DNA of 64,000 nt from Vitrella brassicaformis CCMP3155 (GCA_001179505.1 CDMY01000791.1:62001-126000), one strand, 5' to 3'. Shown: positions 31,939 to 61,408, counted from the stretch's first letter. Program-made: numbers and translations. The notes: generated by a model from the sequence alone, not told the origin.

Positions 31939-32312
31939 GTGACTGACGACGGGCCGTTTGCTTCTGTCATTCCGTGTTGATTGAGTTTAAGTAGGGGTAC
32001 ATACGTTCAAGTCTATACAGAGACAGACGGGTGTGGGTGTGCTGCGTGGACCAGCTGTCCGCAGCAGAATCATCCGTCCTTCTCGTCCTTGCCTAGCTAG
32101 GTCCTGCCTTGTCTTGCCTTGCTGTGTATAAGTCTGTCGATTGATTCCTTTCTGTGTCCTGTTGTGGCAGTTTTGATCATTACGACGTATCGATTGACTG
32201 TCTGTCTGTGAAGAGAGTCAGTCAGTCAGGCAGCCAGTCAGTCAGTCATACACCTCTCTCTCTCACTTACTCGTTCTCTCTCGCTCGCTCTTTGTCTCGT
32301 GGTCTCGAAGAG

Positions 32313-38300: not shown

Positions 38301-41300
38301 ACCAAGTCGACCCGAAGACTCTGCAGCAAGAGACGTGCACTGAGCCAGTCGACATCCCCCACTTGTACGAGGGCCTCCGAACCAACGGCCTCGTGTACGG
38401 CCCCCGCTTCAGGACCCTCAGGCAGGCCTGGGTGGGCACAGGCGACACGCGGGGGCAGGGCCTGGGGCTGGTGCGGCACGGAGGGGCTGGGCTGGAGCTG
38501 TTCGAGCGGCTGTTCGGCTTCCACCCAACCATTCTCGACGGCAGCCTGCATGTGGTGGCTTGCATCCTCGCAGCAGAGATGGCGCCGCCCAATGTGAAGG
38601 AGAGGGAGGATGCCGAGGACGACGACGGTGAGATGAAGCCCGCCACCCTGCACTACGATGGCATCTTCGTGCCCAGCTCCGTCAAGCGAGTGTCCATTGG
38701 GTCAGCCCCCCTCGGCGACAGTGTGTGGTCTCACGTGAGAGTGAGGCCTCAGGCGTCCGGGGACATCATGAGCCTCGACGTCACAACTCTCGTCGCAGAT
38801 GTGACTCTTCTGACCGATAGCGGATCGGTGCTGGGCGAGATCGAGACTTTGACGCTGAGGAAGTTGCACAGCACGAGCAAGATCTCTTACGCCATGCCCA
38901 AGGACGCCCTGTGGACGGTAGCGTGGGTGCCTGTGCCTGACCCGAGTGACGCATCATTGGCACAGCAGCGGCATGGGCCGGATGCCAGCAGTCCCTCCCT
39001 CTCTCCGGCCCCTCCCCGCTATCTGTTGATCGGTCTCGACGACACTCAAGCCGCCCAGATCAAGGAGGACCTGCAGGGTGTGGTCGACATCGTTGCTGTG
39101 CCGGACTGCAAGACTGATGCCGACGTCGGCCGGGTGATGGCGACAGTGCGCGAGGGCAGCTTCAGCAGAATCATCTATGCGGCGGCACTCGTGCTTGGGG
39201 CAAGTGTTGTTGATGTGTTGGATGGAGCGTTGAGACTGGTCAAGGCCCTTGCGAGTGACGAGAGTGGTGACAGCTACGCGAGTGCCACACCCACATTCAG
39301 TCCCAGCACCCTACAAGACAACATCTCCCCTGCTGCGCCGCCAGTCCGCTCTCACACACCTCGTCTGATCCTCTTGAACCAAGAGTCCGATCCCGTGTCC
39401 GTCGGCGCACACATGGCTCCTGCCGGTCTGTGGGGCTTCACTCGGGCGGTCAACGCGGAGCTCGCCGGTGTCCTCGAAGTTGAGTGCCTTGACGTCAGCA
39501 TCATGTCGCGGACGGACCACCACGACACATGGACAGAGGCACATGGCCTGACAGATGTCGCAAAGAGGCTCCGCAAGGGTGTGGAGGCGCTGGAGCACTC
39601 GGGCCAGCAGACCCTGGCGATCCGTCACGACAAGGCATTCGCCCCGCGCCTTGTCCGTCTTCTCGATGACCCCACGGGTGCTGTCGAGTGGTCGATGCAG
39701 CGGAGAGGGGCCCTTACCAATCTCAGAAGGCGGAAGCAACCTGTTGCCTCACGCCCACCTCCACAAGGCAGCCAAGTGGAGTTGCGTGTGTGCGCGGTTG
39801 GTTTGAATTTCCGCGACGTGTTGAATGTGATGGGACTGTATCCGGGCGACCCCGGGCCGCCGGGCAGCGACTGCTCGGGCATCGTCACGCGACTCGGACC
39901 AGACGTCACCGGCGCCACTCAGCACCATCCGCACTTCCGAGTGGGCGACGAAGTGCTGGGCATTGCGGCGGGCTGCCTCAAGACCTACGCCACGACGAGC
40001 TGCCTGCTGCTGACACACAAACCGATCAGTATGACCTTCGAGCAGGCCGCGGCGCAGCCCGTTGTCTTCACGACCGTGCAGCATGCCCTCGGAGACCTGG
40101 CGCAGCTCAAACAAGGCCAGAACGTCCTCATCCACGCGGCCACGGGCGGCGTCGGCCTCACGGCCGTCAACTACGCCAAGCGAGTCGGGGCGACCGTTTT
40201 CGCCACGGCCGGCAGCCAGGAGAAACAAGACTACCTGCGATCTCTCGGCGTCCAGCTCGTCGCCAGCTCCAGAGACCCGAAGGTGAGTCAGTCCATTGCA
40301 TGAGGGTGTGGTATGAGACGGCTGTCATCCTCCTTGTGTGTTGCCTGCTGCTGCTCGTCAGGTGTTCCGCGATGCCCTCGTCTCGTGGACTGGCGAGCAC
40401 GGCTTTGTCAACACGGTCCTCAACTCGCTGTCTGGCGACTTCATCAAGGCCTCCCTCGACGGCCTGCGGCAAGGCAGCGGCGGCACCTTCATCGAGCTCG
40501 GCAAGCGGGGCATCTGGACAGCGGAAGACGTCGCTGCCAAGTACTCACACGTCACCTACCATGTGGTGGCCATCGACGACACCATCGAGCAGCAGCCGGC
40601 GGACTTCCAGACCCTGTTGTCCCGCATCCACAGCCCTCTCGCCGACGGACAGGGCAGGTTGTCCGATCTGCCGCTGACTGAGTTCGATCTGGAGATGGAG
40701 GGAGTCGAGGCCTTCCAGTACATGCAGAGGGCCAAACACATCGGCAAGGTCTGCCTCCGACTACGGAGCTGCTTCGACCCACCGCCCCCATCGCCATCCC
40801 AGGCACTGCTGCAGGGCAAGAAGCTCCACGCGACACTTGAGGATCGTGTGTCGGACGTGTTGGATGGGTGTCAAGACCAAGTGTCAAGCTGGATCCAGGG
40901 CATGAAGGAGCTCGATGACATCTGTGTGAGCCTCGTCAACAATGCCCTGTCGCGGCTGTCCGAGAAGCAGGGCCGTGGGGACCGAGTCGAGGAAGCCACG
41001 CTGCAGCTGCTTCGCGCTCGGCTGTCTGCCATTGATTCCTCGACCGCCTCTGACCTGAGTCGCCCGCAAGGCACCGTCGCTGCTTCCGTGTCGTCTGTCG
41101 AAGATGTTCTGAGGAGGCACAGCGAAGTGGATGCCGAGGCAAAGCTGCTGCAGGCGGTCATGACGCGACTGACCGATGTCATCGACCAAGGCCAATCACC
41201 GTCAGCTGGAGGCCAGAGGGACACTGAGGGCGGTGCAAGTGCTGCCCAGCCTCAAGATGGCAAGGAGGGCCATCTCGTCGACGCGGCCTTGTCTCACGGG

Positions 41301-44300
41301 ATTGAGGATTGTTTGGATGTTTCGCTGTTGACACACACTTGTTGCCGAGTGGCGGCACAGGCCATCAGGGCGATGGAGGATGCATGCTCGTCCGGCCGAC
41401 ATTTGTCGGTCCTCATTGTGGGCCACAGCGTCGGCCACGCCGTCCAGTCCCTCGTCCGCGAAGTGGCCGACCACAACGTCCGCATCACTGTCACCGACAG
41501 GGACTTGCCGTCGCTGCAGAAGGCCGCTGAGAAGCTTCGAGGCCTGCGGAACCTTTCGTTTGCCTTGCTGGATGTGTCAGAGGATCCACGGGCTTACGGC
41601 TTCGGCTCGGCTTCCTTTGAGGCCGTAATCACCGTCAATGCCATCCGGAGCGCTGAGGACTGTGACGCAGCGGTGCGACACCTGAAGGACCTCCTTACCG
41701 ACAATGGTGCCCTCATCCTCACGGAACCAGGCCTCCTCGGGTCGCCTTTCACTGCCCTCACGATGGGTGTCTTCGACTCACACGCTACTCCACATCAGGA
41801 CGGCCTGACGAGGGACTCGATTGAGGCAGTGCTGGAGAAACACGGCCTTGACGCCAGCCTGCCTGGCGGGCAGTCCCGACTCTTCCAGCAACAGCGCCTC
41901 ATCCTTGGCGTCTCTGAGGTCCAGTCTCATGGTCCGCGGTCCACCTCTCCTGCGCATGCGCATGCGCCTGGGGAGTCGTGTTATGTGATCACCGGAGGAT
42001 TCGGCTGCCTGGGTCTGTGGATGGCGCGGCACCTTATCGAGAATGGTGCCCGTCATCTGGCCTTCCTGTCCAGGAGCAATGCTCCAAGAGACGAGTACCG
42101 ACCCGAGTGGGAGGCGCTCCAGCAGAGCAGCGTCACGATCGAAGCCATTCCATGCGATGTGACGGACGCAGGCAGCGTCAGTGCTGCAATGGAGCAGCTG
42201 ATCGACGGCAACTCAAAGCAAAGGCCCCCCGTCAAGGGCGTGTTTCACCTTGCCGGTGCCCTGGCTGACGGCAGTCTGCAGAAACAGACGCGAGAGATGC
42301 TGCAGCTGGTCTTCGATGTCAAAGTCAAGGGAGCCCACAATCTGCACGAGGCGCTGCAAGGCCTTGACGTCGAGTTGGACCACTTCACGGTGTTCTCGTC
42401 CATCACTGGTCTGTTTGGGTCCCTCGGCCAGTCCAACTACGCCGCGGCCAACTCGTGTCTTGATGCCTTCATGGCCTACAGGCGATCGACGGGCTTGTGC
42501 GGGCAGAGCATCCAGTGGGGCCCCGTGGCGCAGTCGGCAATGGCGGGCAGCAAGCGAGTGGAGGAGCTGGTCGCACTACAGGTATGCACACACGGATGCA
42601 TCAGCCAGCCAGACACACACACACACACACACTCACACACATGCATTTTCTTTCCTGCGTGCAGGGGCTGAAGCTGATCGAGAGGCATGTGTTTGAGAGG
42701 GGTTTCTATGCAGCCGTGCGCACCGGTGTCCCCCAGGTGTGCATCGCCCTCATCAACTGGAGGGCCGAGGCGTTCGCGCACCGGCCGTCGGCCTTCTTTG
42801 ATGCCTTCCGCTTGAGTGACAGTGTCGACGCCTCGTTCCACCAGCGACAGACAGACGGTATGCTGACCGGCGACATGGATCCCATCGCCCTGAAGCTCAG
42901 CCGCATCCCTGAACCGGAGCGCAAACAGTGGCTCCAGTCCGTGGTGCTTGACGCCGTCGAGAAGAGCAGCAGCGTCCGGCCGTCTCTCTCCCTGCCTTTG
43001 ATGGAGCTGGGCATCGACTCCCTTGCGGCAGTGGAGCTCCGGAACGAGCTGTCCCGACGGCTGGGCATACGCCTGCCGGCCACCCTGCTCTTCGACTTCC
43101 CCACCGTCGGGCAGATCGTCGACTTTGTGTATGAGGAAGCCATGAAGCAGCTCCACGACGGCATCGCCGAGAAGAGCCCTGGTCAGGCCGCTCTAGGTGG
43201 GCTGGACAAGGGCTCTGGTGCCGATGCCTTGGTCATCAGTGGGATGGACTGCCGGATGCCGGGTTGCGAGGAGTCGCCTGGCGGCTTCTGGCGTCTGTTG
43301 GTCGACCAGGTGGATGCAGTGCGGCCAGTGCCGCTGAGTCGGTGGGACATGGACGAGATCTATGACAGCAACATGGAGGCGGACGGCCGCAGCTACTGCA
43401 AGGAGGCCGCCTTCGTGTCACACGCTGAGCTCTTCGACATGGGCTTCTTCGGCATATCGTCAGCTGAGGCCGAGACCATGGACCCGCAACAAAGAGTCAT
43501 GATGGAGGTCGGCTATGGCGCGTTGCATACGGCCGGCTATCGGCAGCAGAGCGTCTCGGGAAGCAACACCGGGGTCTTCATCGGATGCTGCGGCTACGAC
43601 TGGAGCTACCGACTGGTCGACGCCAAGTCGATTGGCACCTACACCGGCACCGGCGTCGCCGTGTCGATCCTAGCTAACCGCATCTCCTTCGCGCTTGGCC
43701 TTCGCGGCCCCTCATTGACTATCGACACGGCCTGTTCATCGTCCCTGGTAGCTCTCGACGCTGCCTGTCAAAGTCTGCGGTCACACCGGTGCCGCACCGC
43801 CCTGGTGGGCGGGGTGCAGCTGATGCTCAGTGGACAGGGGCTGGTGGTCTTCTGCAAGTCCAAGATGATGTCACCCAGCGGCCGCTGCAAGACATTCGAC
43901 GCCAGTGCCGACGGATTTGGCAGAGGGGAGGGGTGCGGGGCTGTCGTCGTGGAGTCCATGCACTCCCTCACTGACCGGGCGGCAGGAAGACATGCCCTAG
44001 CCATGGTCCGTGGCTCAGCAGTCAATCAGGACGGCCGGAGCGCGACGCTGATGGCCCCCAACGGCCCAGCACAGCAGGACTGCATTCGCCGAGCCCTCCA
44101 GGACGGCGACGTGCGGCCTGAAGACGTGGTATTCATTGAGACCCACGGGACGGGCACGCAGCTCGGCGACCCGATGGAAGTGGGCGCGCTCAAGGCTGTA
44201 TTGGTGGACAACCACAGGTCGAACCATCAGCCGCTCTTCCTCGGGTCCGTCAAGAGCAACATCGGGCATCTTTTCGGGGCTGCAGGCATTGCAGGGCTCA

Positions 44301-47300
44301 TCAAGACCATCCTGGTGTTCCAGCACGGCCAGGTGCCACCCAACGTGCACCTGAAACAGCTGAGCCCCCACCTGGACTTCGACAGTGTCATCACGCTGCC
44401 GACGGGGATGGCTGCACTCCCCACGTACCCGGAGGACAGCGGGCGGAAGTCGATGGGCGGCGTCTCGTCATTCGGCTTCGGCGGGACCAACGCACACGTC
44501 ATCATCTCTGCAGCAGCCGACGGCCCGCGTGACGCAGCAGCACTCACCGCCTTGGTACAGGAGAGGCACATCTTCCTCAATCGGACGTCGTTGCCGTGGA
44601 CCGACGTGTGGCATCCCTTCCTCAAAGAGAAGGCTGCACGGGACGGCCGTACGGCTTACCTGTGTCCCGTCGACGCCAAGGTGTTTGGTGTGGTGTGCGA
44701 CCACGTCATTCTGTCCCGCATCATCTGGCCTGCGGCTGGCTACCTCGAGATGGCGGCGGCGGTTGCACGCGACGCAGATCGCAAAAGGAGGAGGAGCGGC
44801 GTCGTCACGCTTGAGGACGTGAGCATCGACAACCCGCTGCTGCTCAGAAGGCCGCCAGATGACACGGACAGGCAAGCCACCTGGACTGGGCCCGTGCTGT
44901 CGTGCGACATCGATCCAACCGATGGTGCTTTCGAGATGACCGCCAGTGACGAACATCTGGTGGCGGGGAGAGCCCTCATGGATGAGACTGAGGGCGCCGG
45001 GCTGGCGGATATCCCTCCACTCCAAGAGATCCGCCAGCGGCTGACGACCGAGATATCCCCCCATCACTTCTACTCGACCGTGGCAGAGGCGGGGTTGCAG
45101 CTGCAGCGGAAGTTCCAGGTTCTGAAGGAGCTGTACTGGGACCCTTCTTCACTAGAGGTGCTGGGGCGGGCAGAGGTGGACACCGATTTGCACCTGGGCA
45201 CGTCCTTCGAGAGCTCCTTCGGCATCCACCCCGCCCTACTGGACGGCACACTGCAGCTGCCCGCCATGGGCATTCTCGCCACCCCCGAAGGCCACACCCC
45301 TGACTTGTTTGTCCCTGCTGGCATCAAGACGGCCACCATCTCGTTCAAGACGCAGCCGCATTCGCGAACGCTCTGGTCCCATATCAAGGTCGGTGCCCGC
45401 GACACGGAGAAGGGCACACTGGACATCCAGATGACCGTGTGGGATGGCGAGGGCAGGGCCGTGGCTGCCTTCCAGCACTTCACGTACCAACAGGTCAAGA
45501 TGGGACGGACCATGCAGCAGGCCGCCATCCGAGAGCTCCGAGAGACGACCACACTATGGCAGGTCGTCTGGGAACCCCTCAAGGATGGCACCCAGACCAG
45601 GAACACAGAGGACGAGGCAGCTCCAGCAGATCCATCAGCGGAGAAGGGCCACGCTGATCGACCTGTCCTTCTTGTCCTCAGCTCATGCTGTGATCTGGGA
45701 GATGCACCACCTCTGCCCGTGGGAGTGACGACGGTCCACCTCACAGCATCTGACAAACATGGGGGCTACCGCGAGCAGGTGCAGCCCTTCCTGGTGCAGT
45801 CGAGCGACAAGTGGAGGCAATGGGAGGCTGTCATCTTCTCCCCTGGCCCACCCAGCAGCTCGGACAGAGCCACCATGGCGGCGACAGAGAAGATGGTCCT
45901 GTACGAGGCCATCCAGGTGGCGCTTTCGCTCTCAACCAGTACTTCATCCGAAGGCGGCAAGGAGAGCCAGGGACAGCACAACGCAGCCCTGTTCATCGCC
46001 GCCGCAGGCGCACTCCACGGACTCAGCGGCGCGGAACCGCACGAGCCAGTTCATGCCGGTCTGTTGGGTGGCCTCGCCCGCTCCCTCCGCCTCGAGCTGC
46101 CCCAGCTGTCGATCCACACGGTGGGCTTCGACAGGCAGACATGCACTCTACCTCTCATCGTGGACAAGGTTCGGGAGCGGATCGATGCCGGCCTGTCTGT
46201 GGAGTCTGAGCTTGCATGGGGGGACCAGCAGTGGCGAGTGCCCCGGCTGGCCAGCGGGGCGCAGCTGCTCCACAAGGGCGGGGGGATTAAGTGCACTGGG
46301 GCCACCCTGCCGGAACTGAGGGTCGAGCCACTGCTCGACAAGGAGCGGAGGGCACCGGAGGGCGCAGATGGAGAGGTCGAGATCCGAGTGCGTGCCGTAT
46401 GTCTTGTCAAGGACGATGGTGGTCTCGGTGGGGCGACGGGCAAAACCGTCGCAGGAACGGTTGTGGCTCTTCCAGACCTTCCAGACGACGGCTTGGCTGA
46501 CAACAGGCTGCAGGTTGGGGATGATGTCTTCGGCTTCGTCCCCAGCGGTGCCCTTCGGAGCTACGTGACGACACATGCAACGCTGCTGGCCAAGGTGCCC
46601 CCCCAACACCAGCTGTCCTTCGAGCAAATGGCCGCTCTCCCTGCTGCATTCGCCATCACCGACACTGGGCTGAGGGACCTGGCCCAAGTCAAGTCTGGGC
46701 ATAAGGTGCTCATCACGGAGGCCGCAACCGACGTGGGTTTGGCGGCGATTCAGTACTGCCGTCGTGTGGGTGCGACGGTGTATGCGACGGCTGGGAGCGC
46801 CGAGAAGCAGCAGTACCTGCGGTCTCTGGGCGTCGAGTACGTGACGAGCACGCGAGACGTCAGCCGCTTCAAGACCGACATGAGGGCCTTCCTCGGCGTC
46901 CCTCGAGAGGGCGGCGGTGCATTGCCGACCGATGGCGATGCCGGCCTCGACGTCGTCCTCAACTGCCTGTCGCAGGGATCCAATGAAGAAACGTCAATGG
47001 AGTTTCTGCGAGCGGGAGGGTGCGTTGTGGACTGCGGGAATGACAGTCGCGACGGAGAGAGTGGTCGCCGACCTGACGTTCGTTACCACAGACTTGCCTT
47101 CGCTGACCTTCTCGGCAGTGATTCTGGTGTGCTGCGGCAGAAGCTCGATGAGCTTCAGCAAATGCTGAGCGATGGTCGCCTGCAAGCCCTTCCGCTGCGT
47201 GCCTTCGACGTCGACACCAACCAAGCGACAAAGAACGGGCGCTCGGGGGTTGCTGCCGCATTCCAGTGCCTGCAGGAAGCACAGCACATAGGCAGCGTCA

Positions 47301-50300
47301 TCGTGCGCTTCCCAACGTGCTTCGGTTCCTCAAGGATGTTACACGGCGGCTCCCTCAATGGTGTTCACGTGATAACAGGTGGTGTGGGTGGATTGGGTTT
47401 GGTGGTTGCCCGTTGGCTGGTGAGTGAGGGCGTCAAGTCGATAGTGCTCGTGTCGCGCAGGGGCGCCCCGCCGGCCCAGACCGACGCCAAGACCGGAGAG
47501 CCCAACCCCCTCTACACACACTGGCAGTGGCTCACACAATCGGCCGCAAACGTCACAATCAAGAAGGCAGACGTCAGCAACATGGAACACGTGGACTCCT
47601 TGGTTGCTGAGTGTGCCAGCGACGGCATGCTTGGAGGGATATGGCATGCTGCGGGGGTCCTTGCGGACGCGCCTGCAGCTGACCAGACCCTCGAGATGAT
47701 CGGGCGGGTCTTCGACCCGAAGGCTCTCGGTGCGTGGAACTTCCACGATTCGATGGCCAGGCAGGGCGCTGAGTGCGGCTGCCTCATGGCGTTCTCCTCG
47801 GTCACTTCCGTCCTCGGAAACTTTGGGCAGGCCAACTATGCGGCGGCCAACTCGTGCCTCGACGCCTTGATGCACTACAGGGCAACGGTCGCTTCCATCC
47901 AGCAGCAGACTGGCATCTCTGCAGACACGCCTGGCGTGGCCGCTGAGGAGCCCCCAGGCGTCCCTTGCTGCATCAACAAGAGCATCCAATGGGGAGCCTG
48001 GTCCGAGCAGGGCATGGCCCTTGGCACCGTCGATGAGAGGCGGCTGAAGGCCATCGGGATGCGGGGGATCACCAACGAGATGGGACTGCGGATCATCGAC
48101 ACCCTCATCCGCTTCGCTGACCCGATGCCATCCGCGTCAGTGACCCTGGCGCAGCCACTGGACCTGCCCCAATTCCTCAAGGCGAGAGATCACGTGCCTG
48201 CACTGTTCGTGAACCTCGCCCCGAAGAGGCAGGAGGGCTCTGGGAAGACCAAGCGCATCAGTGGTTTCGAGAACATGTCCGCCGAGGACAGATTGCAGTT
48301 CGTGCAGACGACAGTGTCGCAGGCAGCGAAGGATGTGTTGAGCATGCAGGCGGACGAGATGCCCTCCCCGGACACTCCTTTAGGGGAGCTGGGCCTCGAC
48401 AGCCTCTCGGCCGTCGAGTTCAGGAACAGGATCAACGAGCAACTGGGGGTCAAGCTGCCGCCCACCGCCATGTTCGACTTCCCAACCATCACAAAGCTGG
48501 TCGAGTACATCTACGAGGAGGTGTCCCCCGCAGAAGGCACAGATGCGGCCGCAGCTGCCGATACCCAGCTGGCGGATCGGCAATTGCAGGACCAATCTGC
48601 AGTGGGGGTCGGGTTTGCGATCACGGGCATGTCGTGCCGCTTCCCGGGTGGCAGCAACTCGATAGCCGCCTTCTGGCAGGCACTGATGGACAAGAAGGAT
48701 GCGGTAATCCCCATCCCCTTCTCGCGTTGGGACGGTGACGTGGTCTACAACCCCGACATGGACTCGGACGGCCGGTCGTCCTACACGCGCATGGCCTCCT
48801 TCCTCGACCACCCGGAGCGATTCGACTGCACCTTCTTCGGCGTCAGCCGAGACGAGGCGTGGTACCTCGACCCGCAGCAGCGCCTCATGCTCGAAGTCGG
48901 ATACGAGGCCCTCGACCAGGCCGGCCACGACAAGTACGACCTGGCAGGGGAGATGATCGGGTGCTTCATCGGCGTGTGCAACTCTGACTGGGCGGGGGTG
49001 ATGAGAGGGACCAAGGCCACGGCCTACACGGGCACAGCGGTGGCCCTGTCCCTCTGTGCAAATCGCGTGTCATACACCCTGGGCTTGAAGGGCCCCAGTA
49101 TGTGCTTCGACACGGCCTGCTCGTCGGCTCTGGTGGCATGCGATGCGGCCTGCCTTAACCTCCGCGGCGGCCGATGCTCAGAGGCACTAGTTGGCGGAAC
49201 ACAGGTCAGGGAAGTGAGGCAAGTCGGAGGGATAAGCATTAGGAGGCACCCATTGTCTCCTCTTGGATGTAGGTGTTGAGCACGACCCAGACATTCGTGG
49301 CCTTTTCTCAGTCCAAGATGCTGAGCCCTGACGGCCACTGCAAGACCTTCGACGCAGGCGCCAACGGCTTCGGCAGAGGCGAGGGCACGGGAGCTGTCGT
49401 CCTCAGCCGACTGGCCGATGTCGAAAAGGAAGGTCGCCTTATGTGGGGCATTCTCAGAGGCGCAGCGGTCAATCAGGACGGCCGCAGTGCCACTCTGATG
49501 GCACCCAATGGCCCTTCCCAGCAGCAGGTCCTGAGGATGGCTCTCGCTGAGGGCCGAGTCGACCCACGTGACGTCGCCTATATCGAGGCACACGGGACCG
49601 GCACCGTCCTTGGTCAGACCAACACACCACACGCGCTGGCATACATTCAGACGGAACACATACACACGTGGATGCATCTCCGCAACGTCTGCAAACTTTC
49701 CTTCAGGTGATCCAATCGAGCTCGGTGCCTTGCAGACTGTCCTTCCCAGACGGTCCCCCGGGGCGCCCCCCCTGGTGATAGCTTCCGGCAAGACCAACAT
49801 CAACCACCTTGAGGGGTCGGCAGGCATTGCAGGTCTCATCAAGTTGGTTCTGGTGCTTCAGAACCAGATCGCCCCCGCCAACATCCACCTCAAAGCCCTC
49901 AACCCGCTCATCGGAGTCGAAGAGTGGGACGTCGTCTTTCCCACGGAGTGCATGCGACTGACGCCGACGCGACACGACGACAATGGTGCAGCCACCCTGG
50001 TAGGCGGCGTATCGTCTTTTGGCTTTGGCGGCACCAACAGCCACGCCGTGGTTGAGTGCGGCAAGGCCAACACCGCCCTGCCCTTCCACCAACGGCCCAA
50101 GAGGACCATCGCCTTCCTCTTCACTGGCCAGGGCTCGGAGTCCGTGGGCATGTGCCGACAGCTGTACCAGAGAGAGGAGGTCTTCCGCACAGCCATCAAG
50201 CGATGCGCGGCCATTCTGGACAAGCTTCTCCCTGAGCCCCTCATGGCCGTCCTGTACCCGGATGTGCCCAAGAAGGAGATCGACGAGCGCACCAGCCAGC

Positions 50301-53300
50301 TGAAGGCGTCGCGGTATGCCCAGCCCTGTCTGTTTGCCGTGGAGTATGCCATGTGTGAGCTGTGGCGGTCCAAGGGCGTCACTCCTGACGCTGTCATCGG
50401 TCACAGTCTGGGCGAGTACGTGGCGGCCGTCGTGGCCGGCGTCATGAGCCTGGAGGACGGCATCTTCCTGGTGGCTGAGCGGGCCAGACTCATGGCGGAG
50501 CTCCCAGAGCAGGACGGCGCCATGGTAGCAGTACGGGCATCTGAGGAAACCGTGCGCCAGCTCATCGACAAGGAGGGGGCAGGCCAAGAGGTGCAGATCG
50601 GCGCCATCAACGGGCCGAAAAGTGTCGTGTTGTCCGGGAAGAGAGAGGCTGTGTATCGGGTGCTCGACACGGACAAGTCCCTCAGCCGGACTGAGCTGGA
50701 CGTCACTCGCGCCTTCCACTCGCGCCTCATGTCCGACATGTTGGCGCCTTACGAGGAGGCCCTGGGGAGTGTGGAGCTCTCCCAGCCATCAAATGGCGTG
50801 ACATTCGTGTCGACTCTGACGGGCAAGCCTGTCAAGGAGGAGCTGTGCTCGACTGCTTACTTCACGCGACAGATCATGGAGCCGGTGCGGTTCCAGGACG
50901 CCATCACAGCTGCGGCGACCTCCGTTGGGTGCGATTTGTTCCTGGAGGTTGGCCCCACACCCACACTCACTCGGCTGGCGGAGAAGATTCTGGAGACGAG
51001 CAGCGCCACCCCAGCTCTGATCGCGTCCATCAGTTCCAAGGACAGGGAGGCCCCACACAGCGCCTGGAACAGGACCTATGGCCAGGTGATGAGAGAGCAG
51101 GGCATCATCAAGGAGAGGGTGGTACTGCGGCCCAAGGAGTTCCCCTGGGGTCAGCCACGCCACCCCATGGTCGAACAGACCATCGCGGTCGCCAACTCGT
51201 TCTCGCAGAGGAGCGTCATCTACGCCACCAGCCCCCACGGCAGGCCGCAGCCGCTAATCAGGGACCACCTCACACAGAATGAGCGCATCTATCCGACATC
51301 CTTCCTCGTCGAGGCGGCTATGGCCGCGTACGCCCTCTCACAAACAGCACTCGATGAGGAATTCGGTGTGCGGTCGTACCTCGCGGAGGACGCCTGTGTG
51401 TGCGCCATGAACCTGCGAATCGCCCAACACCCTTCAGTCGAGACGCCTCAGCCTGGCCCGTCTCCCTCTCTCGCTCTCGGGGAGACCAGCGACGCCAAAG
51501 ACGAGGCCGCAGCACAGCCAGCGGCCACCCCCGAGGTGTGGCCGACGCTGCCGTCCTTCCCCATCGACGTGCAGCGAGGCGGCACGGTTGTCATCAGAAG
51601 AGACGGATCTAGTCAGGACTCCGACACAGAACAGGGCATCCTCACTGCCGAAGTCAGAGTCGACGAGAGGGTCCAGGAGGACGCAGGGGTGCATATCGGC
51701 TCGCTGGCGTCTCGCTGTCCGATCCACGTGGCTTCCGGTGACTTCTACGCGCTTCTTGGGTCCCTCGGCACAGGCGTTGGGAAGGCCTTTGCCCTTGCGT
51801 CAGGCATTCGGTACGGCGAGAGGGTGATCACAGCAACATTGAGACTTCACGAAGCACGCGACGATCATGAGGCCTTCGAGGAGGGGTTCCTCTTCCACCC
51901 CGCATTCCTGGAGAGCGGCTTCCACCTGACAGCCTTCCTCATGGCGGTCACAGAGCTGGGGGTGGATCCGCAGAAGCCAGCGAGTGCGACGCCTGTAGGG
52001 TACCTCCCGAGGTCTGTGGCGGAGGTCATGATCACCAACATGCCCCTCTGCGAAGGCACCGATACTGAGCTGCTCATCTGTGTGCAGCTGGATGCCCTGT
52101 CCGGGCGTGCCGACATGCACTTGTATCGCCGCGAAGGCGGGTGTGTGGCGTCCATGAGGGGGATTGAGCTGCAGCCCTACAAGGCCACAGTCGAGGAGAG
52201 TCGCGCGGTGGATGCCCTCTGGGATGTCGATTGGGTCTCGCATCCGCATTCACCTGCAGCTGTTGAGAGCAGCGGCGGTGCACCGAAGGATGATTGGGCT
52301 TGTCTGATCTGGGTCAGTGATTCCGAGACGGCGGAAGAGGTCACAAGCGTTCTGCCGCCGTCATCGCCACACCAAGTCGTGAGTGTATCGGACAAGGAGG
52401 CCATGGAGTCGGCTCTCTCACGGCCTTGGGGCGGCATCGTCTGTGCCCTGGGGCTGCAGACCTCACTCGACGATGTCTCTGCGCTGGCCAGCTTGGGCGA
52501 GCTGCTGAGAGACCTCTTCTTGTCGCCTCGGCGCGCCATGGACAAGAGCACAAGCAACCGACGAGAGGTCGCGTCGCTGTACGTCCTGACGTCAGGCGTC
52601 CACATGAGGACGCACGACTCCATCGACTGCTTAGCGAGCTCCATGTGGGGCTTCCTGCGCAGCGCACGAGTGGAGATCGGCTTGGCAGTGCGCCTGTTTG
52701 CACTTGACGTCGATCGAGACCTGACACTGAAAGAGCCACAAGCCATTCTTGACCGTGCGCAGCAAGCACAGCGGATGTTGCAACCTCGCGGCGCAGCGGA
52801 TGACGAGCAGCGCTATGAGGCTGAGATGGCCGTACGTGACGGGCAGTGGTACGTGCCGCGCATTGTGCCCTACGGGAGCACTGCAAGTCGGCTGGCGGCT
52901 CCGCGACAGTGGTGCTTTACGGCGGACAGAAAGGACAAGGGGCAGGCTGTCTTCTCTGGACAGACGGCGAGTGCCGCCGTGTCGGCGATGCCGTCGTCGG
53001 CTGATGGCGATCCGCGAGTGGAGGTGCGAGTGGTCTCATTCGAGATCAGTCCTCAAACTGTTAGCGCACACCTGGAGAAGGATGGACGCACCACCACCAC
53101 CCACCATGCGGCAACATGGCCTTTCTGCGGCATTGTCACCGGCACATCTGCGCCGTGTGGCTTCAAGATCGGGGAGCGTGTTGTTGGAGTCACCCAAGGG
53201 CCCTTCGCGTCACATCTGCTTGTGGACGCCAGAGCCATAGGTCGACGCCCGCCTCTCGTGTCGGATGAGGTGGCGGCCGCAGCTGTGATGCCCCTCCTCG

Positions 53301-56300
53301 CGGCCGCCAAGTGCGTTCCCACCGCTGAGCAGACACAAAGCCATCCACGGACTGCCGTGGTGGTGTTGCGAGCTGGCGTGTTGAGTGTAGCGGCACGCGC
53401 AGCCCTTCAGACACTGATGGTGGGCAAGTACAAGACACTCGTCAGTGTCGAGGACCGGCAGGATGCGGACGCCCTCACTGCGTGGCCTGACGTGGACATC
53501 TGCGTCGCCAAGACCTCTACCGAAGTGGCTGACGGCGTGAAGAAAGCGTTTGGTACTGCGGCTGAGGTCGACCTGATCGTGGCGCCTGATGGCGAAGAGG
53601 ATGAGGAGGCTCTGACAGAGCTGAGGAGGCTTGTCAAGCCACCTGGCGCCGTCATCAACGGCGTGGACAGTTCCTGGGAGGCGGGACCAGTGTCCTGTGA
53701 GGCTTTGGCGACGGTCGGTGACATGCTGTCGGACTCCTCATGGGAGCAGCATCGTGACAACCTGGATGTGAGGAATGTGAAGGACATGGAGAACCAGGCC
53801 GCGGAGAGTCTGTTCGTTGCCGGCAAGCAGCTCGTAGCGAAGCTCCCCACCGCGTTGGCATCAGACGGGCGTCCGCGAGGCTGTCACGTCATCACGGGAG
53901 GCCTCGGTGAGTTGGGACTGGTCGTGGCTCGGTGGCTGGTCAAGGAGGGAGCGGAGGCCATCGCCCTCCTGTCTCGACGGGGGCGCCTTGCCCCACAGTC
54001 TGGCGAGTCTCTGCGGGAGCACGTGGCGTGGCTTGAGGCGTCGGCTGCACAGGTGGTGCTCAGGCGCTGTGATGTGAGTCGCGAGAGGGACGTCAGGACG
54101 ACAGTTCAGGCGCTGTCAGAGGAGTTCGCAGCTCGGGGCGGCGTTGCAGGCGTCATACACGCGGCAGGCATACTGGCGGATGCGACTTTGCGCAACCAAA
54201 CAAGGGAGTTGATCGACACCGTGTTCAGACCCAAGGTGAGCCTTCACCTCAGTCAGATACACACGAGGTGGTGAAGGCAATCCTTCATCTATCTCATCTG
54301 TCGTTCGTGTTGGTGTACTGTCAGGTTCATGGCGGGTGGAACATGCACAGATCGACCATCGATCTGGGCGTCGACCTCAAGTACCTCGTGTGTTTCTCGT
54401 CGGTCACGGCCCTGCTCGGCAACCTGGGCCAGACCAACTACTCGGCGGCCAACGCCTGTCTGGACGCCTTGATGGCCTACCGCCGCCACCTCGGCCTGAG
54501 CGGACTGAGCATACAATGGGGCGCGTAAGTGATGCAGACAGAAAGACATACATACATGAGCTTTGCCGAAAGTGTTGGTTGGGACGTCATGGTTCGTGCT
54601 GCGTGTTGCTGCGTGATTCAGGTGGACAGAGCAGGGTATGGCCTCACGGGCGAGCAACCTGGCCATACTGCAGGCAGTCGGCATCGCCCCGCTCGACAAC
54701 GACCTCGCACTCCGCAGCCTAGCCAGTCTCCTGCCGTCGACCACTCACCCAGTGGTGGCTGTCCAAGAGATTGACTGGAGGCGCTTCGCACTCAACCTTG
54801 ACGCAGCCACAGGGCTGTTCAGTCGGGTGTGCCCTCCACAGGCGAAGCGTCAGGCAGGGCGGTCTCGAACCGGCCAACGCCAACATGCCCAGAGAGAGGC
54901 CATGGGCGCCGCGCAGGATCAAGAGGCACTGGACGCTTCACTCCAAGATCTGGGCATCGGCGGCGGTAGGAACCGCACATACGCACTGTGAAGCGGCACA
55001 CTCAATTATCACCTGGTATATTCGTTGCTGCTATTTCGTTCGTTCAGGCGACTCGTCCGGGAAGCCCCAGATGCGGAGTGCTGAGTTGGACCGCATCCGG
55101 GCGCTGCCTGCTGCGGAGCGGCGGCGTGTGGTCGAGTCAGTCGTGCTGTCGATTGCCGAGGAGGTCCTGGCGGTCTCAGAGATGCCCCCCATGGACATGC
55201 CGCTCCAGGAGCTGGGCATCGACTCGATGGCTGCTGTCGAGCTCAGGAACGCCCTGTCCAGACGGCTGGGGGTCAAGCTGCCTCCAAATGTCCTCTTCGA
55301 CTTCCCGACCATCGAGGACATCATCACATTCGTCTTGGGGGACCTGCTGGCAGACGATGGAGATCAAGACGGCAATGGCGCGGCCGCCTTCCAGGCACAC
55401 GCTTCTGCGGCTGTCAGGCGGCAACGGGCTGAGCTGGAGAGCGACATCGGCCTTCCCGGCACCATCAGCCTGGACGGCCGTCGCATCATATCTCCGCAGG
55501 GCCCAGACGGCACCTTCAGGAGCGTTTTCCTGACAGGGGCCACTGGCTTCATGGGCACCTGTCTTCTGGACTCACTCTTGAGGCGCAACCCGTCCGTGAC
55601 TGTCTGGTGCCTCATCCGGTGCAAGGACGAAGCACACGGATGGGACAAGCTGGCCAAGCAGCTCGCCGCCTATCGGCTGCCCACCGACGGGTCTCTTGAG
55701 GACGTCAAGCAAAGAGTAGTGGTGGTCAAGGGGGACTTCACCGAGGACAATCTTGGCATGACGGACGAGAGGTGGCAGGAGGTCGTCGAGAGCGTCGAGG
55801 CCATCTTCCACTGCGGCGCCATGGTCAACTTCTCGGCCACCTACTCGATGCTCCGGAAAGCCAACGTCCTGTGCGTCAAAGACGTTCTCAGGCTGGCGAC
55901 GTCCCTGCCGACCCACGTCATTCCAGTCCACCACGTGTCGACGCTCGGCGTGTTCCACGACAACCTCCACGATATCCCCACCGCCCCTCTGCGGAACGGT
56001 CAGCCAGACACCACTCGCAACTGGTGCCTTGACAACGGTCGCCGCGTCTTCTTCGAGGACGACCCGGTGCTCGAGGACGATCTCTCGAGCCAGCACCACA
56101 TCAAGCTTGCCCTCGGCTACTCCCAGTCCAAGTGGACGGCCGAGCGAGTGCTGCGTATCGGCCAGGAGAGGCGCCTGCCGATCAGCATGTATCGACCAGG
56201 CCGCATCGGTGGCCACTCGAGGACGGGCGCGGTGAACCCGACGGACTTCCCGAATGCGTTCGTCAAGGGCTGCATCCAGATGGGGACCATTCCTGACATC

Positions 56301-58081
56301 GACGTGCCGGTCCACCTGGTGCCCGTCGACTTCTGCGCAGATGCTGTGGTGCACATAGCCATGAAGGCCGAAGGAGCGGGGTACCAGGGGGGCCCTTACA
56401 ACCTCGACAACCCCCACGTCACCACCATGCACGACATAGCAGAGGCTGTGGGCAGCCTGGGGTATTCGTTGTCCTTGGTGCCATACACTGAGTGGCGCAA
56501 GGAGCTCGGCAAGGAGATCAGTGACAATGCGGCGCACCCCCTGGCGCCGCTCGAGCACATGCTCGTCGACGAGCCTCCCAACGTGTGTGACGTGCCCTTC
56601 TTCGACATGACCAACACTTGGTGAGCAAACCACACATGTCAACACAAGAAACACACACGAGTGGGCAGCGCCGGATTTCCTCTTTCCGTCGTACGCACAG
56701 GTCCGCCGTATCTGACGACGAGAGCATCGTGTGTGTGCCTTCGTCAGTGGAGTATCTGGAGGTCAACCTCCGATATCTCCGCGACGTGGACTGGCGCACA
56801 TCGATGCCATCGGTCGGACTGGGCGGCTCCCTGGAGCTGGAGGCATTTGTCAAGGACCTTGGCAGCGGAGAGGCAGTGGCGGCCGACAAGGAGCTCTACC
56901 TGATCGCTGGACCGGCCGTACTCGAGCAGTACTTCACCGGTACGATTCGTGCGATACATACAGGGACAAACAACCAACCAGTACTCCATTAGATGCACCC
57001 ACTTGCCTCCGTATTCAATGTCTGCCTGTCCGTCTGTCTGTCTGTTGAGTGCAGATCTGAGCTACACGCTCTCCCTGAGGGGCTACAAGCTGCTCCTGCT
57101 CCAGCTGCCCGCCGAGGCCACTTCGCCGGACGCCCCATCTGACGGGGCCTCCCTGACGTCTTCGCTCCCCTTCCTGAGCAGCGTCACCAATCTCGCCGGT
57201 GTCCTGGTCGCTGCCTTGAGGCGGAGGAGGAAGGACGGACCCTTCAACATCATCGGCTGGTCTTTTGGAGGTAAATAGGAGGGGGAGGCCCAATCATGGC
57301 CTGGCCGAAGCCATGCACCGACCAATGTGGTTGTCTGTTGCCTGTTTGTCTGTGTTTCGTGCAGCTCTGGTGGCCATTGAGGTGGCGAAAATCCTCAACC
57401 GCCGCACCGACGACAACTCGTGTGTCCCCGTGCTGTCGCTCATCGACCCCCTGGTGCCCATCTCGCTGTCCGCCTCGGCGGCCACCCAGGCGCCCTATTC
57501 CTTTGCTCTGTCGGTCATTCTGTCGACGGTGGTGGGCATGTTCAAGGATGTCCTCCCTGAGGACTTCGATCAGCTCCCTGTGGACCAGCAGCAGCACATG
57601 CTCATGGAGCTCGTCGCTGAGGCCACCGGGGCCAACATCGCAACAGCCACAACAGACGTGGCAGAACAGCAGGAGGGAGCGACTACCAGTGCCGGTGCTG
57701 AGAATGACTTCCTGCGACAGCAGGCCGACTTGGTGTCGGCTGTCCTGGGGGCTGGCGCGCAGCACGCGGCTAAGGGGCCGCATTACGACGGCAAGACACA
57801 CATCATCGACACACCGGTACGCATGCCAAACTGCGAGTCGATATCGAACACATTGTACCGAGCCGACACAAAATATCGTGCTTTCCTTTCTGCAGTGCCC
57901 GAGTCCATTTCCTCCGTCGAGTGGGATGGCCGTCGTGGCGGCCCCCTCTGTGGTGGCTCTGGGCAGCATGAGCATGACACACACTCTGCTGCCCGGCGGG
58001 GGTCACTTCAACTGTCTGCGTGACCCGCATGTCGACCCCCTGGTGGATGCGCTGCTGGAGAAGCTCACTGCTGTCGAGTGA
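32313..58081 (+). CDS. Giant multimodular type I polyketide/fatty acid synthase (~8,182 aa, 15 exons): FAAL-ACP-KS-AT0-DH-ER-pseudoMT-KR-ACP-KS-DH-ER0-KR-ACP-KS-AT-DH-ER0-KR-ACP-R-TE
   Basis: Exons read as 32313-33560, 33649-33807, 33879-34081, 34183-40282, 40362-42581, 42665-49204, 49273-49612, 49707-54235, 54325-54524, 54622-54965, 55048-56620, 56701-56939, 57055-57270, 57365-57816, 57896-58081. All introns are GT-AG and in phase; total 24,549 nt. Three KS with DTACSS/HGTGT/H, four ACP with G(I/L)DS, three KR with TGGxGxLG and YxAAN. Confidence 0.95.
32400..35290 (+). other. PKS loading unit: fatty acyl-AMP ligase (FAAL) + ACP1
   Basis: LQFTSGSTSDPKGVMVTH, FSWLPMYHDMGLVG, APNFAFDL, CGAEPI, PAYGLAENTL, LRTGDFGF..VTGRMKDMVIVRGRNYYPQDVE, KTSSGKIQR; ACP LHELGIDSIAAV. 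Boundaries approximate. Confidence 0.9.
35380..43140 (+). other. PKS module 1: KS, inactive AT (GHGVG), DH, intact ER, pseudo-MT, KR, ACP2
   Basis: KS DTACSSSL/ECHGTGT/NVGHSEG; AT VVGHGVGE (Ser->Gly); DH HEVASKAVFP + HPTILDG; ER GLNFRDVL + LIHAATGGVG; MT-like TVTDRD/LLDVSEDP/FEAVITVNAI/LLTDNGALILTE; KR ITGGFGCLG, LAD, NYAAAN. Confidence 0.85.
43230..48520 (+). other. PKS module 2: KS, no AT, DH, degenerate ER, KR, ACP3
   Basis: KS ends SSFGFGGTNAHVII and reaches the DH start (PWTDVWHPFL) within about 30 aa; DH HVILSRIIWP + HPALLDG; ER lacks GLNFRD and has LITEAATDVG; KR ITGGVGGLG, LAD, NYAAAN; ACP LGELGLDSLSAV. Confidence 0.85.
48610..55350 (+). other. PKS module 3: KS, active malonyl-type AT, DH (Asp->Glu), vestigial ER, KR, ACP4
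   Basis: KS DTACSSAL/EAHGTGT/NINHLEG; AT FLFTGQGS, VIGHSLGE, RAFHS; DH HLTQNERIYP + HPAFLES; ER remnant without a GGVG loop; KR ITGGLGELG, LAD, NYSAAN; ACP LQELGIDSMAAV. Confidence 0.85.
55520..58081 (+). other. PKS release region: thioester reductase (R/SDR) followed by an alpha/beta-hydrolase thioesterase
   Basis: R: VFLTGATGFMG, IFHCGAMVNF, GYSQSKWTAE, RPGRIGG. TE: GPFNIIGWSFGALVAIEVA (GxSxG), VLSLIDP, LPGGGHFNCL. Confidence 0.85.
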
Positions 58082-59747
58082 GACAGAGATGTCTTTCGTC
58101 TGACTGCTGAGTTCATGGGTGTGATGTGTGTATGGCGAAGGCTCGACACTGGTTTCTTGTCTATTTGGGTGTGTGTTGGTTCGTGCGCTATGGCAGTAAG
58201 TAAGACGTCCGTCGTAGGCGATGATGTGGGGTGGGGTGGGGTGGGAGGGTAAGTCTTTCTGTTCGGTGTGTGGATTCAGTCCGCTAAGGATGATATGATG
58301 TCTCTCTCTCTCTCTCTCTCTCTTAAGGAGGTTCATTTGTGCTTGTGCGGCATAAGGTATATGAAGGTGAGTATCAAGACTGTAGGTCTGTCTCTGTGTG
58401 GCGCTAAGTCAGTCCAAAGCGTGCTTTCGACGTGTGCATGGCTGAATGGCTGAACGGCGTGGGTGGGTGCAGGTGCGGGTGTGGGTGATTGTCTTGTCAC
58501 ATATATACTATGTGTAGCTATACGTGTGTGTAGACACGCATTCATTCGTACGTAAGTACGCACATCGATCTGTATTTATGTATTTGTCAGTACGTCTTGG
58601 CATCTGTTCACACAAGTGCGTCCTTCCTAGGCACACTTTTTTCGTCTGGCTCTCTCTCTCTCCGTCTCTCTCTCTCTTTCTCTCTCTCTGTGTCGCCTCT
58701 GCAGCTGTGTACGTCACGAAGGTGTCTTCTTCCGATGCAATCGGAGGCCGGGGCCAGTCTGTCTATCTGTCTGTCTGTCTGTCTTTTGATGTGATGAGGA
58801 AGAAGCTATCGGTGAATGTGGAATGTGGAAGAAGGTCTAGCCATACAGCTGGCCTACGGCGAATGTGGAATTCCACACAAGAAGCGTATGCAGCAAGGCA
58901 AGGCGCGGCGCCTCAAGTAGGTAGCGTTCCTTCTGAATGTTGTCCTGTCTGTAGTCATTCACTAGCTCTCTGTATTGTCTGCCTGTCTATAATACCGGCC
59001 TGTTTATAATCCGTCTGTACGGTGGATTGATTGGGGCAGTTTTGGCTGTTGTGGTGGGGGGATTCTGCTCGACAGTTTGCGTCTGGTTGTCTACCAGTCT
59101 GTCTACCTGTGTGCGACCGACTATTTGGCAATGTATGTATGATGCGGGATGCGACAAAGGGATGTAATGATGCGATAAATGTGGACATGAACATATGAAT
59201 GCCCGTCAGGGCGCGTTACGTCACATTCGTCGTGTCACACACATCAAATGCCTGCCTGCTGTGTCCCCACCCCACGGCTCCCACAGCACACGGCACGGCA
59301 GCCGTTGCAGTTTCCCAGACACTAGGTAGGTGAATTGTGGTTGGTGCACCTGCAGACGCAGTCCGTCCGTCATATGCGCAGACAGAGAAAGAAGCGAACC
59401 AGGCTAAGCTAATCAAGCATGGCAGCGAGAGAGCAGTACATACAATGATGTGTATACATACGTACGATGGACGAAGGGATGATGTGTATAGGGCCCGAGA
59501 CATATCGATGTGTATATACACACACACATGCATATGGATGGATGGATGGACGGCCCAATATATACCAGACCACAGATGCATCATCCATGTGGATGGCCCA
59601 CAGTCTTAATGAATGAATGCCCACGCCACAAGGGAAAAAGTCCTCAACGGCCCATCATCGCTCACACACACACACACACACATACCCATATATGGCACAA
59701 CACACACAGCGCCCTCCACACAGCGCCCCACCCCCCCTTCCCCCTCG

Positions 59748-61408
59748 TCATGGGCAGCCACAGGCCATCTTGAGGGCTTGGAACTCCTCCATGATGCAGT
59801 CGAGGAGCATGTCGGGCGACTTGACCGTCCTGAGGTCGCTGCCAGCCGCCACCCACAGGCCGTTGCTGTAGGAGAAGGCCGTCACTCCCACACCCACGTT
59901 GCCCATGATGGGCGGAGCGAAGAAGCAGTGCCGCAGCGCGATGCCTTTCACAGGACTCAGACGCTGGGGACCTGCAAGCAAGACACACGACACACTGTAT
60001 GTGTGGTTATCCCCCCCTGTCTGTGTCAGTTGTGCCTGCCTACCAGGGACATTGCTGACAAACATGCTGATCTTGCTCCGAATGGGCTTGAGTATCGCCT
60101 CGGCGAGGCACGATGGGCACTGGTAGAGCCACTGCATGAACAGCGCCCCGCCTAGCAGCACACACCCTTGTCTCGATCCCTCCTCAGCTGCCGCACCACA
60201 CACCCCAGCCTCTCGAGCGGGCTGGACGCGTCGGCGACTAGGGGCAGCACGGCGAATGCGTTGAAGAAGCTGTTGGACAGCGTCTTCAGCTCGCCCGTCC
60301 TCAGATTGACCGGCCAAACGAACATGGCATCTCGCCAGGTGCTCAGCGGCGATGGCAGCTCACCCTCTGCTGCATTCCTATCACCACCGTGGGTCTTGTT
60401 GATGTATCGGACGATCGCGCCCACCACCAGCGACACAAACACCTCATTGATGGACACTTTGCTTGCACCCGCCGCCATGAGCACTTGATCAGACATCCTC
60501 ACGGACCTCAGCTCGTCCATCGAGATGCACCTGGGCAGTGAGACCTGTCGCAGGCCGCCGGGCGAGGGACGGTGGGGGGCCGAGCGGGATGACGGTGGTG
60601 GGTCCCATGACGGAATAGACGGCAGCAGCGGCAGCGCGAGGATCGGCAGGGGCGCGTAGAAGAGCATCGAGGCGTACATGGCCAGCCGGTCCCACATGCT
60701 GAGTGACGGCAGGTGAGAGAACGACTTGCTGATGCTGGCAGTCTCATCTCGGTCGAAAAGCTCTTTGGTGATCATGCGCACGAGAGCCGCACCATCGCCG
60801 AGCAGGTGGTGGATGCGCCACACGAAGATCGTGCTGGGCGCGCCGTCCAGCCCTTCGCACTGTGGAATCACCTTGATCTGCCACGCCGGGCGGCTCATAG
60901 GCAGGTCCCCGTTGATGCAGATGTCCAAATACTCGCGCAGATCTCGCAAGGGCAGCAAGAGAGGCGCCCCAAGTGACGGCATCTTGCCGCTCCGCCGGAT
61001 CTCCTCTCTCACACAGTCGTGCGGCACCTGGAGGACGTGATTGCGGACATCAAACCTCCCGTCCCCCTTGTCATAGGAGAGGCACCAGCGCCACAGGACT
61101 CGCTTGAGAGTGCACTTGAGCCGCTCGTGCTTGTCCACCCACCGCTCCTTCACGGCCTCCAGCATATGAGCCAGCGACAGCCCATCATCCGCAAAGAAGA
61201 CGATGCTGATGATAGCGGGTGACTCGACGGTCTCGGCTTGAAGCATCATCACCTCGGTGCGGTTGAGGGGCTGCAGGCGGCCATGATGGGACGATAGTAG
61301 CGCCACACAGCCGCACACGGTGCGCAGGCACCATGCTGCGAGGGAGACCGCCATCAGCAGAGGGTGGAGGATGAGAGAGATGACGAACGCGGCCGTCTGG
61401 AGGAACAT
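59748..61408 (-). CDS. WSD: Wax ester synthase/diacylglycerol acyltransferase (WS/DGAT) family protein; apparent -1 frameshift near 60175
   Basis: N-terminal hydrophobic segment, FDVRNHV, LPMSRPAWQI, catalytic WRIHHLLGDGAAL (HHxxxDG), SINEVFVSLVVGAIVRY, WPVNLR, LSNSF, PLERL. The C-terminal part (MFVSNVPG|P..GVTAFSYSNGL) is in a different frame. In-frame 72-nt intron at 59972..60043. Confidence 0.9.

Follow-up and report, generated by a model that had tools for sequence, protein, structure and literature searches.

A thioesterase domain behind the terminal reductase of a Vitrella megasynthase, and its possible diverged counterpart in Cryptosporidium

How does a megasynthase let go of its product when its tail carries two domains that could each release it? 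The release domain sets the output of an assembly line, be it an acid, an aldehyde, an alcohol or an ester. The question is raised by a 64,000-nucleotide stretch of the Vitrella brassicaformis CCMP3155 genome (contig C791, CDMY01000791.1, positions 62001-126000). This whole stretch is referred to as the window, and coordinates without a contig name are counted from its first nucleotide. It contains a type I megasynthase gene that resembles both polyketide synthases (PKS) and fatty acid synthases (FAS). The last five exons of the gene (Table 1) encode an acyl carrier protein (ACP), a thioester reductase (R) and a thioesterase (TE). A preliminary description, made from the sequence alone, had proposed that R and an alpha/beta-hydrolase stand in tandem on a single assembly line.

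Are the two release domains made from the same message? When the whole protein library was searched with the R domain, the top match was a JGI protein of 720 aa (P0001) that is 100% identical and has the length of the splice model, namely 356 residues from the R exon and 364 residues beyond it. The contig encoding this protein (L033; JGI sample 3300017297, Ga0186270_101795; 2,828 nt) is a public, intron-less, RNA-derived sequence. It aligns with the window in five blocks (55052-56622, 56700-56939, 57054-57270, 57360-57816 and 57895-58231) at 99.8-100% identity, with one mismatch in total, and extends 150 nt into the 3' untranslated region, to 58231. Exactly the four GT-AG introns predicted from the genomic sequence are missing from it. 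Because L033 spans the five blocks minus the four predicted introns, ACP, R and TE are carried by one spliced mRNA. The transcript does not end after R, and the introns that had been described as in phase between the R and TE parts are the very ones spliced out. The exons of the ACP-R-TE model translate without stops. Spliced products were studied through the natural transcript contig and its database protein, and the exons of the window were searched singly.

The alignment of L033 with the window has a single gap, a 16-nt 'insertion' in the transcript contig (327-342). A frameshift reading of this insertion was rejected, as it consists of a 10-N scaffold join and a 6-nt duplicated edge (GCGCGG). 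Because of the join, the gene caller split the ACP (131 aa) from R-TE (720 aa). The start methionine of P0001 lies inside the GFMG motif of R, and the split is an annotation artefact. Both the gene and its Pfam domains were already public (PF07993 and PF00975 are precomputed on P0001 at JGI) and have gone unstudied.

Table 1. Features of the megasynthase locus, in coordinates of the window (ACP, acyl carrier protein; R, thioester reductase; TE, thioesterase)
Feature	Position	Strand	Basis
Type I PKS/FAS-like megasynthase gene (~26 kb); last five exons encode ACP, R and TE	~32.1-58.08 kb	+	
Upstream body of the megasynthase	32154..54965	+	Pfam on long open frames
Exon: last carrier domain (ACP4, LGIDSM) and R up to its C-terminal subdomain	55048..56620	+	Pfam, TIGR01746; L033 covers from 55052
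Intron 1, 80 nt, GT-AG, phase 2	56621..56700	+	Read from sequence; missing from L033
Exon: end of R domain (SVEYLEVNLRYL), linker, first TE strand (ELYLIAGP)	56701..56939	+	Translation; L033 block 1585-1824
Intron 2, 115 nt, GT-AG, phase 1	56940..57054	+	Read from sequence; missing from L033
TE exon with nucleophile elbow GWSFG (Ser506 of P0001)	57055..57270	+	PF00975 match on exon alone
Intron 3, 94 nt, GT-AG, phase 1	57271..57364	+	Read from sequence; missing from L033
TE exon with catalytic Asp (LIDP, Asp536) and long helical lid	57365..57816	+	Translation
Intron 4, 79 nt, GT-AG, phase 0	57817..57895	+	Read from sequence; missing from L033
Last TE exon with catalytic His (GGHF, His696) and stop TGA (58079-58081)	57896..58081	+	Translation
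WS/DGAT-like (wax ester synthase / diacylglycerol acyltransferase) gene	59751..61408	-	PF06974, PF03007

Is the reductase complete? The open frame 54771-56624 matches a carrier domain (PP-binding, 3e-14, residues 124-188; motif LGIDSM) directly before R, and then NAD_binding_4 (PF07993) over the full length of the profile (1e-65, profile positions 1-258 of 258). The NCBIfam thioester reductase model TIGR01746 gives 275.4 bits, against a cut-off of 213.35. The sequence FLTGATGFMG, which holds the NAD(P)H motif TGATGFMG, lies at ~55.53 kb, and the catalytic GYSQSKW (Tyr-x3-Lys) is found in the exon ending at 56620, with HVSTLG upstream. TGATGFMG, HVSTLG and GYSQSKW are invariant in a three-way alignment (A1) of Vitrella with Cryptosporidium ryanae and Cryptosporidium canis. 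This evidence points to a thioester reductase that is complete and of the canonical, NAD(P)H-dependent kind; a complete R behind the fourth carrier domain had been described on the basis of TGATGFMG and YxxSK.

What is the domain behind it? The thioesterase family PF00975 matches P0001 at 2e-11 (45 bits; gathering cut-off 26.4) and the GWSFG exon on its own at 1.4e-6 (29.1 bits), while Abhydrolase_6 matches P0001 at 1.5e-4. A check against NAD_binding_4 and PF00975, which the preliminary description had called for, was accordingly positive for both families. All three hydrolase motifs that it had listed were found where they had been placed: GWSFG at 57256-57270, LIDP at ~57443-57454 and GGHF directly before the stop codon. 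They supply a putative catalytic triad of Ser506, Asp536 and His696 in P0001 numbering. A hydrolase of some 400 residues had been described after R; the domain is there, and its size has to be corrected, as 364 aa follow the R exon and the TE proper accounts for about 300 of them.

Comparisons with known proteins agree with the Pfam result. When the TE region (L033:1698-2675) was compared with PDB sequences by phmmer, the matches were exclusively TE domains of FAS, PKS and nonribosomal peptide synthetases (NRPS). The best of these was the human FAS TE (E 0.0015), followed in order by NocB, an NRPS TE, PksA, another NRPS TE (tyrocidine synthetase / AB3403) and SrfA-D. For the GWSFG exon, too, human FAS TE domains are the top matches among PDB sequences. 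In the ESM Atlas, all 30 of the 30 nearest clusters of the Vitrella TE belong to PF00975 (cosine 0.96). A low-confidence AF2 model runs strand-Ser-helix, strand-Asp, helical lid, strand, His, helix, an order of elements that fits a TE; the top Foldseek matches of this low-pLDDT model are all FAS, PKS or NRPS TE domains, at E 1e-3 or worse and TM 0.2-0.3. No match was obtained when PDB was searched with a profile from a two-sequence alignment, and word-index protein searches, whether started from the TE part of P0001, from the tail of C. ryanae or from the TE alone, returned only the queries. At the level of sequence, the assignment of the domain to the TE family can be considered secure.

Within this family, integrated (type I) and discrete (type II) enzymes can be told apart by the place of the catalytic Asp. 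It lies about 30 residues after Ser in the human FAS TE, whereas type II TEs are discrete proteins with an Asp about 28 residues before His. In Vitrella, Asp536 sits 30 residues after Ser506 and there is no Asp within the 35 residues before His696. A MAFFT alignment (A3) puts the Vitrella Ser in the column of the nucleophile Ser of canonical TEs; the match of its Asp, within one column of the Asp of a canonical NRPS TE (P0084), is approximate. At the Vitrella position, the Asp is lacking from both standalone type II TEs that this alignment includes. The domain shares with type II TEs such as RifR and CpTEII its Pfam family, the GxSxG and GxH motifs and a possible editing role, but differs from them in being fused on one mRNA and in its type I Asp position. 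Four features link the domain to the TEs of animal FAS and of modular PKS and NRPS: GxSxG, an Asp that follows Ser at a distance of about 30 residues, GxHF at the C-terminus, and a long helical lid separating Asp from His. It appears to be a type I (FAS/PKS-type) alpha/beta-hydrolase thioesterase with Ser506, Asp536 and His696 intact. There are also differences from these type I enzymes. Identity to any solved TE is low, and canonical TEs directly follow a carrier domain, whereas in Vitrella a whole reductase of about 400 aa separates the TE from the last ACP.

Does the arrangement have relatives? The closest relatives of the Vitrella R, at 43% identity, are from Cryptosporidium: a C. ryanae 'polyketide synthase, partial' (P0002) and a C. 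canis protein (P0003). BLASTP alignments of P0001 do not stop at the end of R. With C. ryanae the alignment passes R and reaches the C-terminus, and with C. canis it extends as far as the Asp motif, so that the post-R tail of about 340 residues in the Cryptosporidium PKS is colinear with the Vitrella TE. The product of exon 56701..56939 aligns with the C-terminus of the Cryptosporidium R together with this tail. The nucleophile elbow GWSFG of Vitrella corresponds to SWSLF in C. ryanae and SWSIF in C. canis, the Asp motif LIDPLVP to LIDPLIP and LVDPVIP, and the His motif GGHF to GNHF in C. ryanae; in C. canis the last of these lies beyond the main BLASTP alignment, and its His is invariant in alignment A1. 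Ser506, Asp536, His696 and Phe697 are invariant across all three sequences.

The likeness of the tails also holds when R is left aside. BLASTP with the TE alone finds the C. ryanae tail at E 3.5e-9 (43.9 bits, against a maximum of 22.3 for 300 shuffles) and the C. canis tail at E 1e-3. The nearest ESM Atlas clusters of the C. ryanae tail are all PF00975 (0.94-0.95). With a profile built from the Vitrella TE and three canonical TEs, both Cryptosporidium tails outscore 1000 of 1000 shuffles, and a profile of canonical TEs only gives empirical p values of about 0.02 and 0.002 for the two tails.

These tails have been described in other terms. Zhu et al. (2010) reported that the R domain of the Cryptosporidium synthase CpFAS1 (CpFAS1-R) is about 780 aa long, and described the C-terminal half as 'unique to the apicomplexans', lacking motifs and homologous only to the R domains of other apicomplexan FAS1 and PKS1 proteins (PMC2995488). 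According to Guo et al., both Cryptosporidium synthases rely on R 'rather than a type I thioesterase' (PMC6568194). The statement in the preliminary description that synthases of the Cryptosporidium type end at R matches this literature; it is probably incomplete, as the C. ryanae and C. canis PKS have a homologous TE-like tail. We consider it somewhat more probable than the contrary that the orphan C-terminal half of the Cryptosporidium R is a diverged TE, with Vitrella as the bridging sequence. The tails compared here are from PKS-type proteins, and the extension to CpFAS1 rests on the homology statement in PMC2995488. In its wider form, the proposal is that the apicomplexan-specific half of R, in Cryptosporidium and, by the homology reported in the literature, in other coccidian FAS1 and PKS1 proteins, is a type I TE that diverged from an ancestral R-TE shared with chromerids and kept in canonical form by Vitrella. 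We lean only slightly towards this wider form. Most likely, R-TE was inherited from a common ancestor with the apicomplexans, in which the TE half later lost its recognisable motifs.

How rare is this order of domains? Genome searches covered 72.7 Mb in 1064 contigs, and R-TE was found once: PF07993 has matches on 15 other contigs, none of which also carries PF00975. Apart from the TE exon on C791, PF00975 scores above its cut-off on contigs C772, C646, C624 and C474. The TE exons 57055..57270 and 57365..57816 have no paralogue in the genome, and a scan of the genome contigs with the TE alignment found no relative. Among the best 150 relatives of R, drawn from 1.84 billion representatives, a TE-like segment after R (about 335-340 residues) occurs only in the C. 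ryanae and C. canis proteins; three others of the 150 have long extensions, which are C-A-T-R, EF-hands and a methyltransferase. Among 57 metagenomic loci encoding R relatives, an extension is present in five and is never a TE. All five were rejected as candidate TEs: FabA-type dehydratases account for two of them, an AurF-like oxygenase and an aminotransferase for one each, and in the last the extra sequence is more of R itself. The C-terminal fusion partner of the bacterial thioester reductase is a FabA-type dehydratase in L041 and L074, an AurF-like di-iron oxygenase in L076 and a class-III aminotransferase in L081.

A tail with two release-type domains is nevertheless not unique in sequence space, because a bacterial NRPS fragment from a JGI metagenome (P0084) has the order T-TE-R, with PP-binding, PF00975 (1e-32) and NAD_binding_4 (7e-76). 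It shares a 90% cluster with a metagenomic NRPS of 4291 aa (P0158). Like the Vitrella tail, this fragment combines a carrier, a PF00975 TE and a thioester reductase on one polypeptide; it differs in placing the TE before R, in its bacterial source and in its NRPS context, and it is uncharacterised. A literature search found no paper describing either the R-TE or the TE-R order, and papers on chromerid and algal PKS were silent on release domains.

Two other megasynthase tails of the Vitrella genome carry Sulfotransfer_1 behind R (C201:164480-167159 and C231:49056-51675, each with both domains on the minus strand). Domains appended after R appear to be a local theme, and R often seems not to be the last domain of a Vitrella PKS. 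These R-sulfotransferase tails, like the ACP-sulfotransferase-TE module of CurM, resemble the R-TE tail in having an extra catalytic domain in the release module. They differ in that the added domain acts on the chain or on the alcohol once it is released, whereas R and TE both attack one thioester. Judged by this chemistry, R and TE would be successive steps only with a TE that works as a transferase, and would otherwise be alternatives.

What chain would reach the two domains? Pfam matches on the long open frames of the upstream body give an AMP-binding loader with an ACP, and then KS-AT-DH-ER-MT-KR-ACP, KS-DH-ER-KR-ACP and KS-AT-DH-KR. The predicted plan is one of three reducing modules after the loader and is CpFAS1-like. 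With CpPKS1 and CpFAS1, Vitrella shares the acyl-ACP-ligase loader, the fully reducing modules and an ACP followed by a thioester reductase; unlike its Vitrella counterpart, which is a recognisable PF00975 domain, the Cryptosporidium tail has lost GxSxG and is invisible to Pfam. The KS modules are probably contiguous with the ACP-R-TE transcript. We infer this from an in-phase intron at 54966-55047 (donor at 54966, acceptor AG at 55046-47), which joins the exon of the KR linker to the ACP-R exon.

The genes around the megasynthase bear on what may become of its product. A WS/DGAT-like gene lies tail-to-tail with it, 1.7 kb past the PKS stop. Its match to WS_DGAT_C (PF06974) is above the cut-off (1.5e-12, 48 bits), and that to the catalytic domain PF03007 is below it (7.8e-4, 19.7 bits; cut-off 23.6), with an HHLLGDG motif read in the translation; overlapping frames imply at least one intron. 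Further downstream, exon 62969-63340 on the plus strand, part of a multi-exon gene at ~62.2-63.5 kb, has a weak match to the START lipid-transfer domain (E 0.005, 16.7 bits, below cut-off). The PKS, the WS/DGAT-like gene and the START-matching gene may form a small lipid-related neighbourhood. Nothing lipid-related was found among the upstream neighbours (1-31 kb of the window). Just upstream of the PKS, the open frame 30093-31064 on the minus strand contains a Ctr copper-transporter domain (2.6e-11), which is unrelated. The adjacent WS/DGAT-like gene makes a wax-ester context more plausible.

How might the two release domains divide the work? The reading to which we give moderate credence is that of a megasynthase resembling a fatty acid elongase, with an ACP-R-TE termination module in which R and TE compete and the TE offers a second, hydrolytic exit. 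The acyl-ACP ligase loader and three reducing modules would lengthen a fatty-acyl starter by about six carbons and give it one C-methyl. R and TE would then compete for one acyl-S-ACP. R would release the full-length product, probably a methyl-branched very long chain, as an aldehyde or alcohol, as has been proposed for the Cryptosporidium synthases. The TE would discharge part of the product in the form of free acid, or else those chains that R refuses, and wax esters could then be formed from alcohol and activated acid by the WS/DGAT-like neighbour. The preliminary description, whose account of the anatomy is borne out and whose interpretation is supported in part, had put forward three roles, namely release of both an alcohol and a free acid as the halves of a wax ester, acyl transfer onto the product of R, and proofreading. 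Hydrolytic release, editing and acyl transfer by the TE are not separable by sequence.

Several observations weigh against this picture and the evolutionary proposal that accompanies it. The transcript contig has its 5' end 4 nt into the ACP exon, and continuity with the KS modules is beyond its reach. AF2 reached a pLDDT of 36 for P0001 as a single sequence and 42 with a six-sequence alignment. No characterised precedent was found for a TE placed after R instead of beside the ACP; because of this, it has to be assumed that the ACP arm can reach the TE. For the Cryptosporidium tails, a search of Pfam and PDB sequences with the C. ryanae tail alone gave no match, and hhalign with shallow profiles returned a probability of 16-17% (E 0.0015, against 0.4-0.7 for controls). 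Finally, neither the WS/DGAT-like neighbour nor the lack of a TE in the other R-ending PKSs can tell product release from editing.

Might the fused TE be a proofreader instead, one that does not release the product but frees the ACPs of acyl chains that are mis-primed, too short or stalled? In acyl-thioester reduction by the related CpFAS1-R, NADPH was consumed only with acyl-CoA of C20 or longer (PMC2995488); an R that refuses shorter chains would need a second exit beside it. An editor has already been proposed in Cryptosporidium, where the discrete type II thioesterase CpTEII prefers C10 (PMC6568194). However, editing TEs are usually discrete proteins, the topology of the Vitrella triad is that of type I, with its Asp after Ser and none shortly before His, and the best matches in sequence and structure are integrated release TEs. 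Proofreading as the role of the domain is in our judgement unlikely.

It is also conceivable that the TE is a non-catalytic relic or a structural module, for example for dimerisation or docking of R, leaving R as the sole release route. The Cryptosporidium proteins lend this idea some weight: their elbow reads SWSLF or SWSIF in place of GxSxG, Pfam is blind to the domain, and the CpFAS1-R construct of about 780 aa is active as a reductase (PMC2995488). For the degenerate Cryptosporidium version, a structural relic seems likely. The Vitrella domain, by contrast, has its triad in canonical GWSFG, LIDP and GGHF motifs and passes the PF00975 gathering threshold, and even in the two Cryptosporidium species Ser, Asp and His are kept, which is unexpected for a purely structural relic. 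For Vitrella, this explanation is quite improbable.

TE domains that transfer to alcohol acceptors exist, the TE of Pks13 being an example. That the Vitrella TE would take the chain from the ACP onto Ser506 and have it attacked by a fatty alcohol that R, in the same subunit or its partner, has produced, so that a wax ester is emitted directly, is a shade less probable again: the R-sulfotransferase tails are a local precedent for a post-R domain acting on an alcohol, the locus has a wax-ester context and the Pks13 TE is among the weak Foldseek matches, but those matches come from a low-confidence model, no sequence feature separates a transferase from a hydrolase, and the idea is weakened because an enzyme dedicated to esterification is already provided by the WS/DGAT-like gene next to the PKS.

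What does a second exit mean for Vitrella and its relatives? Competition between R and a hydrolytic TE, the reading favoured here, can be approached in a natural ACP-R-TE with both predicted active sites intact, which is a system for the reductive versus hydrolytic partition of one thioester. With a WS/DGAT-like gene as its neighbour, the locus hints at a wax-ester pathway that would serve the resistant cell walls of chromerids. Cryptosporidium and coccidian megasynthases are regarded as drug targets, and the making of oocyst-wall lipids is ascribed to them. The Vitrella sequence would bridge a region of ~340-390 residues in the Cryptosporidium megasynthases, and by inference in those of coccidia, to the thioesterase family. 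A second active site or a pseudo-enzyme hidden in this region would, if true, change how parasite 'R domain' constructs and inhibitors are read. If the retained Ser, Asp and His are still used, the parasite synthases would possess, beside R, a further activity in release or acyl transfer that has gone unrecognised.

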